This document shows positions 17,845-50,945 of a DNA stretch of 64,000 nt, piece after piece. This DNA is from Trichosphaerium sp. ATCC 40318 (taxonomy: Eukaryota > Protista > Tubulinea), in NCBI GenBank assembly GCA_038496445.1, contig JALMLS010000281.1, forward strand, positions 115,610 to 179,609, written 5' to 3'. The number at the start of each line of letters is the position of its first letter. Position 1 is the first letter of the stretch. Made by a program: the position numbers and the translations under genes. The notes under the pieces were generated by a model. It had not been told where the DNA came from. It was given only the letters and a program-made list of their open reading frames with translations, and did not search any database.

Positions 17845-18694
17845 GCGATTCGTGTGCTTGAACCACTGTTGAGTACTGGATTTGTGTTTTTTATTCTTCC
17901 GTAAATTCACAATTAAATTTGCTACGGTAAATCATTTGCCCTAAACCACCCGTGCGCATACGGTAGTCGTACCAATAATAGTCTTAGCCACTCTCCAATA
18001 TGCCTTATTAGATTTCCACCAACAGTTAGAATCAAAACTACGCATGTTGGCGCTAGATATGGACAACAATTGACAATGTGATTTAACCACTTTGTAAGGC
18101 GGGAGTTCTTGACCTCCGCTCACAAAAAAGTCAACAAGCGCACGATAAATATCTACATTAACCACTTTAGCGTAGCGTACCAATCGTTGGTTACAGTACT
18201 GATATTGTTTCTCCAGTTAGGGTATACGCAAGCAAGTTTTTAATTATTCGCTACTAGCATATCATGAGCTACATATCATCCAAGACATGTGTTTTCTTAC
18301 TACCCTTTTCTTTCCAGCCAAAACCACAAACAAAAGCTGCGCAGACCAAGAAAAGAGGTGGCTGCTCGATCACGTTTTACACCTAAACTGGCTAAATCGG
18401 TTCAAAACTGGAATGACACACTGTTGGCTTTGTATTTCTAATCTGTTGTTACTTGGAGTAATCACGAAGTGGCCAACAACACGCTGAATGAGGCTGTACA
18501 CTGAACCCTCAAGACGGCTAAAATACACTGAAAGTGAGTAAGACTTTTTTGAGCCAAAACCAATTATACTAAACTAAATAAACAGCAATAAAACGTGTTA
18601 GGATTGCTTTTTTATATTCCGTGGTGTAGGTGGCTTAGTGGAATACAAAATACATCTTTAAAGATGCTTAAGAAAAGTTTTATTCATTGTACTC

Positions 18695-21600
18695 TTACAC
18701 TGTTCCTGCTCCATCGTACGCGTCAAATACTGCTTTAAATGACTTCATATATTTTTCTCCTGATGTTTCAAACTCTTGTCCGGATGAGAGACATGATACA
18801 AAGTGTTGCTGAGTCCCAAAAGTGCTATTATTTTTTAGTATATTTAAACGAGAAATTGGTGACAAACCTGTCTCCTGGATATGCTCCTTTTTGTGGTATA
18901 ACATAATTATGATAGTAGTAAGGCTTGTCGTGAACTGAAACCTTGATTCTACCATCTACACCTAACTCTATGCGACCTTTTTTTCCTTCGACTAAATCGC
19001 CTGTTACGAAAAAGTAATAAAACAGTTCAACTTACCAACAAATATGCCAAAAGTAACAGCTTTCTTTCCTTTAGTGGTTGGTTCCTTTTATGCGTTAGAA
19101 TATGGAAGTGGCTAATATAACATGCCTGTGGGTCTGCGCATCTATGTAAGTCAATGAAAACCGATACATCGTTATCCATTGTGAGTGTTGTTACTGTTAA
19201 ATCTTCACCTTTGATTTTAGGATTTATCCTTTAAAATTTCGCATTACTTTTGACAACCAATACTAGTAGGCTTACTTTTTATGAACGGATTGAATATCTT
19301 TAATTTCTCCAAATAAGTATCTTGCAGTATCTATAAAGTGAATACCAGACTCATACAAAAGGAACTTTGGCATATCTATTTCAATTTTTAGTTCAAACAT
19401 ACAGAATAAAATCAGATATATAAATAACTTACCTTTGAAGTAAGGTTGGTCAGTATAAGGCTTATCACTGCGACCATCACCCTTCTTTGATTCCCAGCGA
19501 GCATAGTATGGATCACCTTCAACAACACGTCAGAAAGACTACAAAGGTCAAAAGAGTCTATAAACATACCAATAACGCCCTTATCCATCAATGCTTTGAT
19601 TTCTCTGTACCACACTCTCCAACGCCAATTCTCATTAATCATCAACTTAACATTCTATAATGTACTCTCAGAAGAGCATAGAGGACTTTCATTTGCGTAC
19701 ATTCTTCTTTGTTACTTCCAGCATCTGTTCAGCTTCTTCCATTGTAACCGCCATTGGTTTCTGACAAAGAATATGAACACCTTGTTCAGCAGCTAGTGTT
19801 GTCAACTTTAAGTGAGAAGACGGCCTAAAGAAAACATGTAAATCTAAGAGAAGGTGTCACTTGTGATCTCTTAATACCTTGTTACTATATCAACGAAATC
19901 AGGTTTTTCTGCTGCAATCATTTCAGCAGCGTCCGTGTAGGTTTTAGGAATACAATGCTTAGCTAATTTTGAAAAACAAGTTAACAAAAACTACAATACA
20001 ATGGTTCTTGAGCTTTTATCTACTTACCTGCGAATGCTTCACCTTTGCTTTTATCAACATCGCACACAGCAACAATTTCAGCACCAGCAACGCGTTTCCA
20101 ATCAGCCATTTGAATGTCACTGTTGCAAACAGAAGGACGTTAACCTTTTTTTGTTCTATGATATAAAGCACTTACCTGAAGAATCCTGTACCGATTGTCA
20201 CTCCTCGAAGAGCTTTAGAAGCTACTTGGGCTTTTGTAGTAGGAGCACAAACACGATTAATTGCATCCAAGACAGCTGTAGTCACCTGAAAATGAATGAG
20301 CAGGAGACTTGTTTCGAAAATAAACATGATATTTACCATTTTTGTGTTTGCGCGACCACCAAGATCAAAGCCATGATTTTTTGGGTTTGCAAGAACATCA
20401 CATATCTATGTATACATTGTTTAGGAGGATAAACACATGCTAAAATTACAGTGTGACATACGGCTTGGTCTATGAGTGAAGCACATCTTTTCAAAGTTGA
20501 ATCATCGTGTCTGTCTGCCAACCAATCCAGCATCATACCTGCTGACATCATCTGGCCTATAGGATTTGCTACGCCTTTTCAAGAGTCAGTAAAATTAAAT
20601 GAATGCTATTGACCAACCTTTACCAGCGATATCTGGAGCAGTGCCTAATTTTGGATTGGTTAGTTTTTTTATTGTAAGAAAAAGTGATGTACCATGAGAT
20701 GGCTGAAACATTCCATACTTATCACCAACATCACCTGAAGGTGCTAATCCCATACCGCCAATAGTACCTAGAATTTTTATTGGCACTGTAAACAGCAAAG
20801 AAGAAGTCCTTGAGGGTGTACCTGCTGCAAGATCCGAGATTATGTCACCAAACATGTTTTCAGATACTACGACATCAAAGTTCTCAGGTTTAGTTACCTA
20901 AAGATACATTAAAAGCGTTGGCGATGTGACACGTGATTCATGAATATTAAAAACTTGCAGGTAAAAAGTAAGTACCTGGTACAGAGTGAAAGCGTCAATA
21001 TAAGCATAGTCCTTTTTGATATCTGGGAACTCTGTGGCTACTTCATCATAATTTTTACGCCAGTACGCAAGACTTCTTAATACATTCGCTTTATCCACGC
21101 ATGTTACCTTTCATATGGTTAGTATATATTGAATGAATGCGTCTAGAGTATTGTGTACCTTCTTTAAACCGTTTCGTTTCTTTGCGAGCTAAAAACCACG
21201 TGTCAGTTTTTGACAAAAAAAAAGACAGAAAACTAGGCCGTACTTCGAAAGCATATCGAACAATACGCTTAGTGCCCTTTTCTGTTACTATCATTTTATC
21301 CGTGAACGTCTTAAAGGGTATGTTAAATCGATTGGGTACACTCAAAGCACCTTTGTCTGTTCATCAAAAGTTCCCTTTCCTTTTGGGAAACAGTTAATAA
21401 AAAATTCAAATGTCGTTTAAAGATTTACCTCTAGACCAGTACAAACCTTCTGTATTCTCTCGAAGAATTACCTATAGAATGTCATAAACCACGTGACTCT
21501 ACTGACAGCATACATAGTCAATAGGTTGTCCTTTGGCCAGAATAGGCTGAACACCTTATGTACAGAAAAATAAGCCAAAAAAACCCAAACAACACTTTCG

Positions 21601-22211
21601 CTTTCGCACCTGGGTACAATTTTATAGGACGGATACCAGCCTAATAATAAAATAGTAAATATTACTAAATGTGGCGTTGTACGTTATTATATCTAAATTA
21701 TACTTACATAGAGATCTAATACTACGCGGAGAGTCAACTGAGGAGCTATTTCTGTGCCATCTTCGTATCTAATTGATGGCAAACCTGCCGATCCGAATAA
21801 AATGGCGTCACACTCCTTACATGCTTCTAGAGTATCATCTGGAAGGTCCTAAGAGTGGTGAGCTTACTTTCGGTACATAAAACCGCTTATTCGAGACTAG
21901 CGAACAGTAACAAAATTCGAAAAAGCTAATGACGCTTCAAAAACGTGTTGTGCGGAGGTTTTTGGTTGTTTTAGGTGTACGCACTTTTCCAGTCTCCTTA
22001 TAGCATACAGCTCCACAGCGCTTATGTACATACTCTAATGTTGTGCCAGGGAAGTATTTGAAGAGCTCTAACCGTATGTTACATCAGCTTCAATAGAATA
22101 GAAGAACTTTTCAAAGTTACCATCAAGCATTTTGATCGTTTCAGCGACAACTTCAGGACCAATACCATCGCCTGCGAGTACAGCTATTTTGTATATTTTC
22201 TCGGCAGCCAT
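18695..22211 (-). CDS. Fusion protein: N-terminal isocitrate/isopropylmalate/tartrate dehydrogenase-family domain + C-terminal Gfo/Idh/MocA oxidoreductase (D-apiose dehydrogenase-like); about 20 introns
   Basis: [68 protein letters not shown]|VTTAVLDAI, continuing without a stop into [84 protein letters not shown]. Confidence 0.88.
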
Positions 22212-22593
22212 ATTGCTAACAGTATTACAGTGTACAACAATAATACAAGGAATCACAAACTGAAAGGTTTCAGTAATGTTCAAAACACTCCAAAGAGAAC
22301 TGTACTCACTTATGCTCTTCTGTACCCACACTACTACTCTAACACTGTTTTTCTTTTACAACGTATCTTTCATAATGTCAAAGCTGGGACTGTAATGTCA
22401 CGTGGACAAATTTGTTCAAATAGGTGATAAGAAATAATAGTCGAAAGTTCTCTTTACTTTTTTTCTAGAAATTTTTTTTTTACATAACGAAAAGTCGTTT
22501 TGTCGTAGGTTCTGTCATTCACGTCTAGACTATAAATACAGCAAAACGCACTGTGCGCATGAGTTTTTAAACAATACGTGCATGTATTCATGG

Positions 22594-22929
22594 CTACCCA
22601 TCAGCCAGTTCTAAGCACCTTTGAATTATTTTCTTTTTGACTTCAAGGATATTGTCATGTGGACTGACATTTATCGTCAAAGATTTACCCAAAATACTTT
22701 TCGTGTGTACTTCTGCAGCTCCATGTAGTGCTATAGCCATATGCATAGAAGACTCGTCTACAATAGAGTAATCGTTAAGAGTGCGGCCATCTTCTAATAC
22801 AACGCCGGCATAAATTAAGCGTTGTCGTTCAGGAGGCATGCCAGCATCCCATAAATCTGTTTTAAGGTCATTATCGCTTGTAGTGTGCTTTTTGGCCGAA
22901 CCATCTACAGTTTTGACGAAAATCCGCAT
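22594..22929 (-). CDS. Divergent tandem ubiquitin-like protein (one UBL with an internal deletion plus a partial second UBL); possibly a pseudogene
   Basis: MRIFVKT, GMPPERQRLIYAGVVLEDGRTLNDYSI, then a second UBL start (VHTKSILGKSLTINVSPHDNILEVKKKI). No di-Gly motif. Confidence 0.7.
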   Translation of the reverse strand: MRIFVKTVDGSAKKHTTSDNDLKTDLWDAGMPPERQRLIYAGVVLEDGRTLNDYSIVDESSMHMAIALHGAAEVHTKSILGKSLTINVSPHDNILEVKKKIIQRCLELADG

Positions 22930-46647: not shown

Positions 46648-47274
46648 ATGAGAGTCCTTTCTTTACTATTAAACATCCCAATTGAAGTACATTATCATAT
46701 CATCGATTTGGACTTTGAAGTGTATCAAAAGTGGCCATTATTATCAAAATACAGTGCTACAACAACACGATTCAATTACGAGCTTCAAAAACATGGCACG
46801 TGGCTGAAAAGATGTGACACTTTTGGTGACACAAACAATATCAGTCAAGTTTTCGTTAATGGTAACAAAGAAGGAGAGCTAAGGTGTTGGTATAATAACA
46901 AAAGCCAGTTGTATGAACAAGGTAACTACTCAAACAATATACTGCAAGGTGAATACAAGTGGTGGCACAGTAATGGTCAATTAAAGCGTCAAACTAGTTA
47001 TACTGATGGTAAGCGAGAAGGAGAGTTTAAGCAATGGCATTTTAATGGTCAAATATATCTCCAATGTCATTTTGTTAAAGGTAAGCTTGAAGGAGTGTAT
47101 AAAGAATGGTATGATAATGGTCAATCATACCTGCGTTTCCATTATGTTAATGGTTTGAAAGAAGGAGAATATACTAAGTGGGATCAAAATGGTCAAATTG
47201 TGAAAGTTGTATCTCTCGCAGCGTTAGCAAATATAACAAACCCATATTTTGTTTTAGTTGAATTCATGTTCTAG
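46648..47274 (+). CDS. F-box-like + MORN2 (YwqK-type) repeat protein, intronless, copy 1
   Basis: LLNIPIEVHYHII N-terminus; five repeats of about 24 aa of the form G.Y..W..NGQL.....Y..GK.EG. Confidence 0.85.
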   Translation: MRVLSLLLNIPIEVHYHIIDLDFEVYQKWPLLSKYSATTTRFNYELQKHGTWLKRCDTFGDTNNISQVFVNGNKEGELRCWYNNKSQLYEQGNYSNNILQGEYKWWHSNGQLKRQTSYTDGKREGEFKQWHFNGQIYLQCHFVKGKLEGVYKEWYDNGQSYLRFHYVNGLKEGEYTKWDQNGQIVKVVSLAALANITNPYFVLVEFMF

Positions 47275-50348: not shown

Positions 50349-50945
50349 ATGGCAAAGAAAGCCATGTTGTTATTACATATCCCAGTTGAACTACATTATC
50401 ATATCATCGATTTGGACTTTGAAGTGTATCAAAAGTGGCCATTATTATCAAAATACAGTGCTACAACAACAAGATTCAATTACGAGCTTCAAAAACATGG
50501 CACGTGGCAGAAAAGATGTGGCAGTTTCGGTGTCTCTCCACAAAACATGAACACTATCAGTCAAGTTTTCGTTAATGGTAACAAAGAAGGAGAGCTAAGG
50601 TGTTGGCATAATAACAAAAGCCAGTTGTATGAACAAGGTAACTACTCAAACAATATACTGCAAGGTGAATACAAGTGGTGGCACAGTAATGGTCAATTAA
50701 AGCGGCAAACTAGCTATACTGATGGTAAGCGAGAAGGAGTGTTTGAGCAGTGGCATTTTAATGGTCAACTATATCTCCAATGTCATTTTGTTAAAGGTAT
50801 GCTTGAAGGAGTGTATCAACAATGGCATAATAATGGCCAATTAAAAATGCGTTTCCATTGTGTTAATGGTTTGAAAGAAGGAGAATATATTCAGTGGGAT
50901 CAGAACGGTCAAATTGTGAAAGTTGCGTATATCTCACGGCATTAG
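50349..50945 (+). CDS. F-box-like + MORN2 repeat protein, intronless, copy 2
   Basis: Close paralogue of 46648-47274 with long identical stretches; about 160 bp of 3' flank is also shared. Confidence 0.85.
   Translation: MAKKAMLLLHIPVELHYHIIDLDFEVYQKWPLLSKYSATTTRFNYELQKHGTWQKRCGSFGVSPQNMNTISQVFVNGNKEGELRCWHNNKSQLYEQGNYSNNILQGEYKWWHSNGQLKRQTSYTDGKREGVFEQWHFNGQLYLQCHFVKGMLEGVYQQWHNNGQLKMRFHCVNGLKEGEYIQWDQNGQIVKVAYISRH

Follow-up and report, generated by a model that had tools for sequence, protein, structure and literature searches.

A Trichosphaerium gene that joins a LeuB-like dehydrogenase and an ApsD-like sugar dehydrogenase in one spliced reading frame

Gene fusions are among the strongest clues to function that sequence alone can give. 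In a 64,000-nt stretch of the genome of the amoeba Trichosphaerium sp. ATCC 40318 (contig JALMLS010000281.1, positions 115,610 to 179,609; hereafter the window), an earlier note had described a gene in which a LeuB-like dehydrogenase runs in frame into a D-apiose dehydrogenase-like oxidoreductase. This locus raises the question of whether the two halves are made as one protein and, if so, what two such enzymes would do together. Judging from sequence comparisons, we think it probable that this eukaryotic gene is intact and transcribed and encodes a single bifunctional enzyme of 710 residues, which would catalyze the first and the third step in the oxidation of tetrose- or apiose-type sugars.

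One spliced reading frame across the junction

The fusion gene lies on the minus strand, where a single open frame (18695-22211) runs from an ATG at 22211 to a stop codon at 18695-18697 and comprises 26 exons and 2133 nt, encoding 710 residues plus the stop. The exon model is the sole stop-free GT-AG combination that fits both the joints of spliced contigs and the lengths of the contig records, and its cumulative lengths match the record coordinates of one such contig, X3 (exon 16 ends at 1176; exon 19 occupies 1354-1477). The N-terminal domain, a LeuB-like member of the beta-decarboxylating dehydrogenase family Iso_dh (20250-22211, residues 1-361), is encoded by exons 1-7 (22211-22121, 22067-21985, 21848-21708, 21640-21610, 21554-21514, 21471-21429 and 21379-21351), exons 8-14 (21309-21244, 21188-21159, 21107-20976, 20897-20822, 20767-20693, 20644-20618 and 20574-20462), exon 15 (20405-20337) and the first part of exon 16 (20285-20176). 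A linker within exon 16 (20211-20249, residues 362-374) leads into the C-terminal Gfo/Idh/MocA (GFO) sugar dehydrogenase domain (18698-20210, residues 375-710), which continues through exons 17-20 (20119-20028, 19962-19878, 19824-19701 and 19654-19570) and exons 21-26 (19516-19433, 19375-19276, 19228-19126, 19084-19036, 18991-18868 and 18824-18695).

The junction itself falls within a single exon. Exon 16 encodes, in order, 12 residues of the C-terminal helix of the first domain, the 13-residue linker and 11 residues of the glycine-rich Rossmann start of the second, and it is spliced on both sides, in agreement with the in-frame fusion that the earlier note had proposed. Intron 15 (20286-20336; 51 nt, GTAAAT..TTTCAG) is, as had been pointed out there, itself in frame and stop-free, and it is spliced out in the contigs. 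The further claim that no separate start divides the halves also held: there is no methionine between residue 349 and the glycine motif, and the next one, residue 390, lies behind GxG, so the second domain cannot be translated separately with an intact NAD site. All of the peptide strings quoted in the note were found in the translation. Its figure of about 20 introns proved too low; the gene has 25 (41-136 nt, median 53; phase counts 11, 10 and 4), of which 24 are GT-AG and one, intron 23 (19085-19125, 41 nt; joint 19083>19125 in two runs), is GC-AG. The surrounding genome is eukaryotic, with short, densely spaced introns, and the composition of the gene is host-like, with a GC content of 0.41 in the coding sequence and 0.32 at third codon positions (GC3) compared to 0.37 in the window.

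The junction is also crossed by assembled contigs from public runs, which we aligned to window positions 18600-22300; joints in these alignments read CT..AC on the plus strand, equivalent to GT..AG on the minus strand. The X3 contig (1959 nt, 100% identical) runs from 22230, in the 5' untranslated region, to near 18931 with all introns removed and both halves included, so that the transcript extends to at least 22230. Runs X1 and X2, which belong to another study and are labelled as another organism, contributed shorter spliced contigs that are 95-99% alike. Exon 16 (20176-20285) is uninterrupted in X3 record 10 (positions 1069-1176) and in X1 record 3, the latter spanning 20028-20119 and 20176-20283 and continuing into the upstream exon. 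A look at transcripts across the junction, as suggested in the earlier note, thus came out in favor of the fusion: spliced contigs from two studies cross it, and no loose ends were seen near 20250. Between the window and the contigs of the second organism there were 10 differences, seven synonymous and three non-synonymous, with two of these three in the linker; in this small sample, such a pattern is what would be expected of a working two-domain protein. One X1 contig ends exactly after the stop codon (window 18698) and runs into Illumina adapter, a library artefact and not a transcript end.

Family membership of the two halves

When ten stop-free pieces of the gene were compared with Pfam, those between 22211 and 20336 matched Iso_dh (PF00180), with exon pieces covering profile positions 1-34, 52-100, 181-226, 227-253 and 286-322. 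The closest matches to the N half, at 60-64% identity over about 355 residues, come from NC10, Latescibacterota, Gemmatimonadota and numerous uncultured bacteria; it is 45-49% identical to plasmid proteins of Rhizobium, Sinorhizobium, Cupriavidus, Aminobacter, Sulfitobacter and Marinovum that are annotated as "isocitrate/isopropylmalate dehydrogenase family". In a maximum-likelihood tree of 54 rows, this subfamily was split from a LeuB-like outgroup (support 100/100), and the N half fell inside a nine-row bacterial clade (support 100/99). The three substrate arginines, the Tyr/Lys pair and the three metal-binding aspartates are all kept, with GDIISD among the stretches that align with the LeuB residues, both in the subfamily alignment and when the nearest relative, from locus L090, is aligned to 3U1H.

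The earlier note had assigned this half to a bacterial subfamily of its own, and the curated models bear it out: no model for LeuB, tartrate dehydrogenase, isocitrate dehydrogenase or homoisocitrate dehydrogenase reached its cut-off. These scores are those of the nearest bacterial relatives, the window protein itself having been scanned exon by exon. Bacterial members of the subfamily fell below every NCBIfam equivalog cut-off (LEU3_arch, 329 against 410), including those for LeuB proper (TIGR00169/NF002898; 276 against 353 and 312 against 393) and for tartrate dehydrogenase/decarboxylase (TIGR02089; 290 and 266 against 470). The subfamily is large, with about 8,000 relatives scored at E < 1e-30 in one search, and its members are labelled at source as "3-isopropylmalate dehydrogenase" or merely as "family protein". 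We also considered whether this half might be ApnO, the enzyme of the next oxidation in apiose pathways, and rejected the idea: the N half belongs to PF00180 and ApnO, a D-apionate oxidoisomerase with a two-metal site (EC 1.1.1.421), has a fold like the one seen in ketol-acid reductoisomerase (KARI) (PMC13753588), although the N half may play an analogous role.

The C half is a Gfo/Idh/MocA protein. It carries the GxGxx(S/A) motif as IGTGFFS, an EKP-type lysine (CQKP) and, in its C-terminal domain, the (D/E)xxxH motif as ESGIH, exon 19 (19701-19823) matched GFO_IDH_MocA (PF01408) with 34.4 bits against a cut-off of 24, and full-length bacterial alignments reached 297 bits; single exons of this half gave matches at the level of the family only. 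At that level, the resemblance to ApsD asserted in the earlier note stands: 5UHW, which we take to be an ApsD, was the only match in the whole Protein Data Bank (PDB) for exons 23 and 26 (with NPKIKGED and QQH..LSSG..TSG in common), and the C half contains QQH..CLSSG...TSG. A place within the narrow ApsD/5UHW clade is not supported, as that clade is marked by a four-residue deletion that the C half does not have. The 5UHW chain is an oxidoreductase of Agrobacterium radiobacter (PMC7535918).

A metagenome scan seeded with alignment A1 yielded 80 loci, the best of which encode proteins 41-44% identical to the C half over about 330 residues; the closest metagenomic GFO proteins together span 37-44% over that length, and other metagenomic GFOs 29-36%. 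Searches of plasmids with single GFO exons by tblastn were too generic or empty. Among the best plasmid matches of exon 19, two loci resemble apiose clusters as these are described in PMC13753588, in that the GFO gene is accompanied by genes for a RuBisCO-like protein, a four-carbon acid sugar kinase and an ABC transporter. A "phosphogluconate dehydrogenase C-terminal domain" protein in both loci was taken for a putative ApnO. The C half is 33-36% identical to the GFOs of these two clusters, and an apiose-type cluster GFO is about 62% identical to 5UHW. In the GFO tree, the C half formed a long branch next to the metagenomic loci L098 and L095, outside a 44-row clade (Shimodaira-Hasegawa-like approximate likelihood ratio test [SH-aLRT], 99) that holds all Iso_dh-linked GFOs. 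Grouping it with the apiose-cluster side was not rejected (approximately unbiased [AU] test, p 0.66), and neither was a position as sister to the Iso_dh-linked clade. We had at one point read two indels as common to the amoeba and the Iso_dh-linked GFOs; we retracted this when a wider alignment showed the "insert" to be general and its absence to be special to the ApsD/5UHW clade.

No second fusion of these two domains turned up in our searches, whose queries were the junction ORF and ORFs of bacterial relatives. The stop-free open reading frame (ORF) that spans the junction (window:20175-20405:-) had no match among 1.84 billion representatives, a result that excludes close relatives only, because the ORF is 77 residues long and 17 of these are encoded by the intron. 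A word search with the 442-residue ORF around the nearest bacterial Iso_dh, a query of sufficient length for 710-residue proteins to be admitted, gave a top 120 that were all single-domain proteins of 310-400 residues with PF00180 alone, a set in which fusions would be hidden; the few with a source name were bacterial. With the GFO part of a 727-residue ORF, a word search of proteins of at least 400 residues returned 18 matches, none an Iso_dh-GFO fusion and some GFO-cyclase fusions. A 773-residue stop-free stretch in locus L074 was discarded, being in the wrong frame and without a Pfam match. In the literature we found nothing relevant on an Iso_dh-GFO pair, on DUF1537 together with isopropylmalate dehydrogenase, or on aceric acid catabolism.

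In the 727-residue frame (L093:1165-3345), one of the GFOs closest to that of the amoeba forms the end, preceded by 390 residues that Pfam does not recognize; either the ORF was called too long in this GC-rich DNA or it may contain an N-terminal domain of a new kind. The GFO-cyclase proteins (P0122-P0138, e.g., P0137 of Botrimarina hoheduenensis) are Planctomycete fusions of about 550-570 residues in which a domain of the same GFO subfamily is joined to a "putative cyclase" (PF04199, kynurenine-formamidase-like), and they may combine a dehydrogenase with a lactonase. On an Aminobacter plasmid, too, a gene of the cyclase family comes after Iso_dh (L005 11024-11998).

Bacterial gene neighborhoods and the origin of the fusion

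The two subfamilies are recurrent neighbors in bacteria. On plasmids of Sulfitobacter and Marinovum, the start of the GFO gene overlaps the end of the Iso_dh gene by 4 nt, so that the two stand in the order of the fusion; both loci also encode a lactonase of the metallo-beta-lactamase fold, a small ABM protein, a TRAP or TCT transporter and a GntR regulator. OtnK and a class II aldolase are encoded at the Sulfitobacter locus as well. Among 48 metagenome loci retrieved with the GFO half as bait and having at least 1.3 kb of upstream sequence, 25 contain an Iso_dh subfamily gene, directly upstream on the same strand in about 15. When 23 loci were instead fetched via the Iso_dh side, a GFO gene lay directly downstream in only two. 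Such associations occur in two or more distinct clades of bacterial Iso_dh: in one the genes are directly adjacent, in another they share a locus. The neighborhood check that the earlier note had called for therefore gave a positive answer, with Iso_dh often directly upstream.

The other genes at these loci point to the breakdown of sugars. Across 43 subfamily loci there were lactonase-type hydrolases in about 15, DUF1537 kinases in five and class II aldolases in four, compared to none of the 10 loci of the LeuB-like outgroup. This bears out the note's suggestion of a catabolic route in place of leucine synthesis: the subfamily sits in sugar or sugar-acid catabolic neighborhoods, not in leu operons. 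The most informative locus is a metagenome contig (L117:12-6734) with the gene order Iso_dh, Amidohydro_2, GFO, OtnK, OtnC, OtnI, in which the last three exceed the curated NCBIfam cut-offs (OtnK, 560 against 350; OtnC, 319 against 250; OtnI, 365 against 325). These six genes are a candidate for a complete route from a tetrose-type sugar to dihydroxyacetone phosphate (DHAP); we noticed no LtnD/DenD-type gene among the scanned ORFs of this contig, in which no search was aimed at one. OtnK and an aldolase are also present in L002, L164 and L160. Two further loci encode apiosidase-like hydrolases (PF13204 with DUF5060). In one of them (L111 2734-4455) the hydrolase gene directly precedes Iso_dh, with GFO 2 kb downstream, and in the other (L097 5914-7566) it adjoins GFO, with an alpha-L-arabinofuranosidase-like gene downstream. 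A small ABM-fold protein of about 95-110 residues recurs beside the Iso_dh subfamily gene or the lactonase (L001 8933-9262, L002 4514-4804, L006 6054-6338) and might be a sugar mutarotase; the closest Iso_dh clade has in its place an unrelated 100-residue protein that lacks a Pfam match (L090 3209-3511).

How the amoeba came by the fusion is a separate matter. The earlier note had envisaged two bacterial genes that were acquired and fused. As judged against bacterial and metagenomic sequences, a bacterial origin is likely, with the N half nested in its bacterial clade, and we infer that the 25 introns were gained, and codon usage fully adapted (GC3 0.32), after that. Transfer as a single pair is not supported. 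Constraining the N half to join the 20 rows with GFO after Iso_dh, a clade named after the tree had been seen, cost 55.8 log-likelihood units (AU p 0.0004); because the N half falls outside that clade, a ready-made operon is not supported as the source. Its own clade has two sets of neighbors: an amidohydrolase, the 100-residue protein, an M20-like protein and a zinc-dependent alcohol dehydrogenase, once with a rhamnogalacturonan-lyase-like gene, or else a DUF1537 kinase, a short-chain dehydrogenase/reductase, a TIM-barrel isomerase and PdxA. Two separate acquisitions followed by joining, or an unsampled donor, are as likely as a single transferred gene pair. The two families are linked in different ways in different lineages, which strengthens the functional inference.

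In the rest of the 64-kb window we found no homologue of the lactonase, the ABM protein, the DUF1537 kinase, the class II aldolase, the RuBisCO-like protein or ApnO. An ORF with two ubiquitin-like halves (22594-22929, minus strand) ends about 380 nt upstream of the start codon of the fusion gene, on the same strand. Further along, at 46648-47274 and 50349-50945, a pair of similar ORFs about 3 kb from each other, each a single exon, contain MORN/YwqK-type repeats (PF07661); among named relatives, Trichosphaerium transcripts match them best, with 38% identity.

Proposed function and comparison with known systems

What would such a protein do? From the families of the two halves and the company that they keep in bacteria, we infer the following substrates and order of steps. 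The C-terminal GFO domain would act first, as an NAD(P)-dependent aldose 1-dehydrogenase that forms the 1,4-lactone from a small tetrose- or apiose-type furanose. The lactone would then open, either spontaneously or through a separate lactonase. In the third step, the N-terminal LeuB-like domain would serve as a metal- and NAD-dependent 2-hydroxy-acid dehydrogenase and oxidize the aldonate to an oxo-acid, most likely a 2-oxo-tetronate-type compound that could feed an OtnI/OtnK/OtnC-like route to DHAP.

Several observations weigh against this proposal. A GFO neighbor is lacking in the sampled bacterial loci closest to the N half, as is a nearby Iso_dh in those closest to the C half (L098, L095 and L140). 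The co-occurrence counts are biased, the loci having been fetched with one half as bait. Homologues of a lactonase, a kinase or a decarboxylase are absent from the 64-kb window. The contigs are assemblies, not raw reads, and come from runs with no RNA record, X1 and X2 being RNA by our guess and X3 of a kind that is not stated. Finally, because the full arginine triad of the LeuB family is kept, the substrate could be dicarboxylic and not a plain aldonate.

This last point underlies a different chemistry, in which the LeuB-like half would be an oxidative decarboxylase of a 2-hydroxy-3-carboxy sugar diacid, such as tartrate, another aldarate-like compound or a C1-oxidised branched acidic sugar (aceric acid), with the GFO half and a lactonase making the diacid from an acidic aldose. 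The complete Arg-Arg-Arg, Tyr-Lys and Asp-Asp-Asp set of the decarboxylating members would be accounted for, as would the TRAP or TCT transporters of the Roseobacter clusters, which are typical carboxylate carriers, the rhamnogalacturonan-lyase-like gene near one close relative, the apiosidase-like genes in two loci and the presence of tartrate dehydrogenase among the nearest solved relatives (209 bits). However, OtnI, OtnK and OtnC fit a monocarboxylic tetronate route, many clusters have sugar ABC transporters, and no uronate-type gene was seen, so we regard a diacid substrate as unlikely. We find it far harder to believe that the domains are functionally unrelated and the fusion a neutral accident, for instance of a leucine-pathway paralogue with an arbitrary oxidoreductase. 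The nearest relatives of each half are indeed not neighbors of one another, but the subfamily is cleanly split from the LeuB-like outgroup and does not occur in leu operons, the two subfamilies are linked in more than one bacterial Iso_dh clade, and the differences between organisms are mostly synonymous in both halves.

The remaining alternatives concern the transcript and the source of the gene. Separate mRNAs that meet near the junction, or chimeric assemblies, could in principle mimic a fused frame that the cell does not make, given that contigs cannot reveal transcript ends or abundance and that the runs lack an RNA record; as contigs of two studies show the exon with the junction joined to its neighbors at either end, no loose contig ends lie near 20250, the GxG motif is not preceded by a start codon and the 25 introns are precisely removed, we consider this extremely improbable. 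The gene might also be an old, vertically inherited eukaryotic one, or have been acquired from another eukaryote, a reading that touches its origin only. Its many introns and host-like GC3 would suit such a history, and our trees sampled bacterial and metagenomic sequences only, but the N half is 60-64% identical to, and nested among, proteins of NC10, Latescibacterota and Gemmatimonadota, the junction ORF had no close relative among 1.84 billion representatives, and the 120 best matches to the nearest bacterial protein have PF00180 alone, at 310-400 residues, and are bacterial where named. A eukaryotic origin thus seems improbable.

The fusion and the repeated bacterial adjacency connect a large subfamily of Iso_dh proteins with the oxidative breakdown of sugars. 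Its link to a specific group of ApsD-like dehydrogenases, lactonases and the OtnI/OtnK/OtnC module provides a short, testable list of substrates, and the common mis-annotation of its members as "3-isopropylmalate dehydrogenase" would be corrected. The gene would also be a further example of a bacterial-type metabolic pair that a eukaryote retains in the form of a single polypeptide, 25 introns having been acquired in the meantime. A more far-reaching version, which we offer tentatively and would not yet favor, is that the LeuB-like subfamily is the aldonate dehydrogenase of a new oxidative tetrose/apiose-type pathway, standing in for LtnD/DenD or performing the ApnO step with a non-homologous enzyme, and that the amoeba independently welded it to the first enzyme of that pathway; a eukaryote would then have a bacterial-style route for furanoses of plant or algal walls. 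In a bolder variant still, the pair may handle a branched acidic sugar of rhamnogalacturonan II, e.g., aceric acid. The C1-oxidised form of that sugar is a 2-hydroxy-3-carboxy acid, the classic type of substrate for the LeuB family.

Compared to known enzymes, the N half shares with LeuB, tartrate dehydrogenase and homoisocitrate dehydrogenase the family PF00180, about 35-40% identity and all catalytic and metal-binding residues; the solved chains closest to its nearest bacterial relative are LeuB (3U1H, 240 bits), homoisocitrate dehydrogenase (about 210) and tartrate dehydrogenase (3FLK, 209). Unlike LeuB, the subfamily has a substrate-specificity loop that is three residues shorter and FQPxHG in place of (F/Y)EPxHG, and its genomic context is sugar catabolism, in contrast to the leucine and lysine synthesis served by LeuB and homoisocitrate dehydrogenase.

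Tetronate catabolism offers the closest parallel for the pathway as a whole. The known route for L-threonate and D-erythronate reportedly consists of LtnD or DenD followed by OtnI, OtnK and OtnC, and its 2-dehydrogenases belong to the beta-hydroxyacid dehydrogenases and not to Iso_dh. Bacterial clusters with both of our subfamilies likewise encode OtnI, OtnK and OtnC, above the curated cut-offs in L117, and in them the Iso_dh subfamily gene occupies the place expected of the 2-dehydrogenase; we noticed no gene of the LtnD/DenD type there, with no search aimed at one. The amoeba's window contains none of these downstream genes. Whereas the known pathway starts from the acid, these clusters add a sugar dehydrogenase and a lactonase in front.

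The C half has the Gfo/Idh/MocA fold of ApsD/5UHW and the motifs GxGFF, CQKP, ENxRW and QPY in common with it. In the part of PMC13753588 that draws on Carter et al. 2018, ApsD is described as the D-apiose 1-dehydrogenase (EC 1.1.1.420) of bacterial oxidative D-apiose pathways. In apiose clusters the oxidation that follows is the work of the KARI-like ApnO (PMC13753588), whereas the C half is fused to an Iso_dh domain. As in other Rosetta-stone fusions, the order of the domains is the gene order of the bacterial pairs, whose members frequently overlap by a few nucleotides, and no intron marks the junction. Because the N half lies outside the clade in which such pairs occur, it looks as though the two families were joined independently here and no operon was copied.

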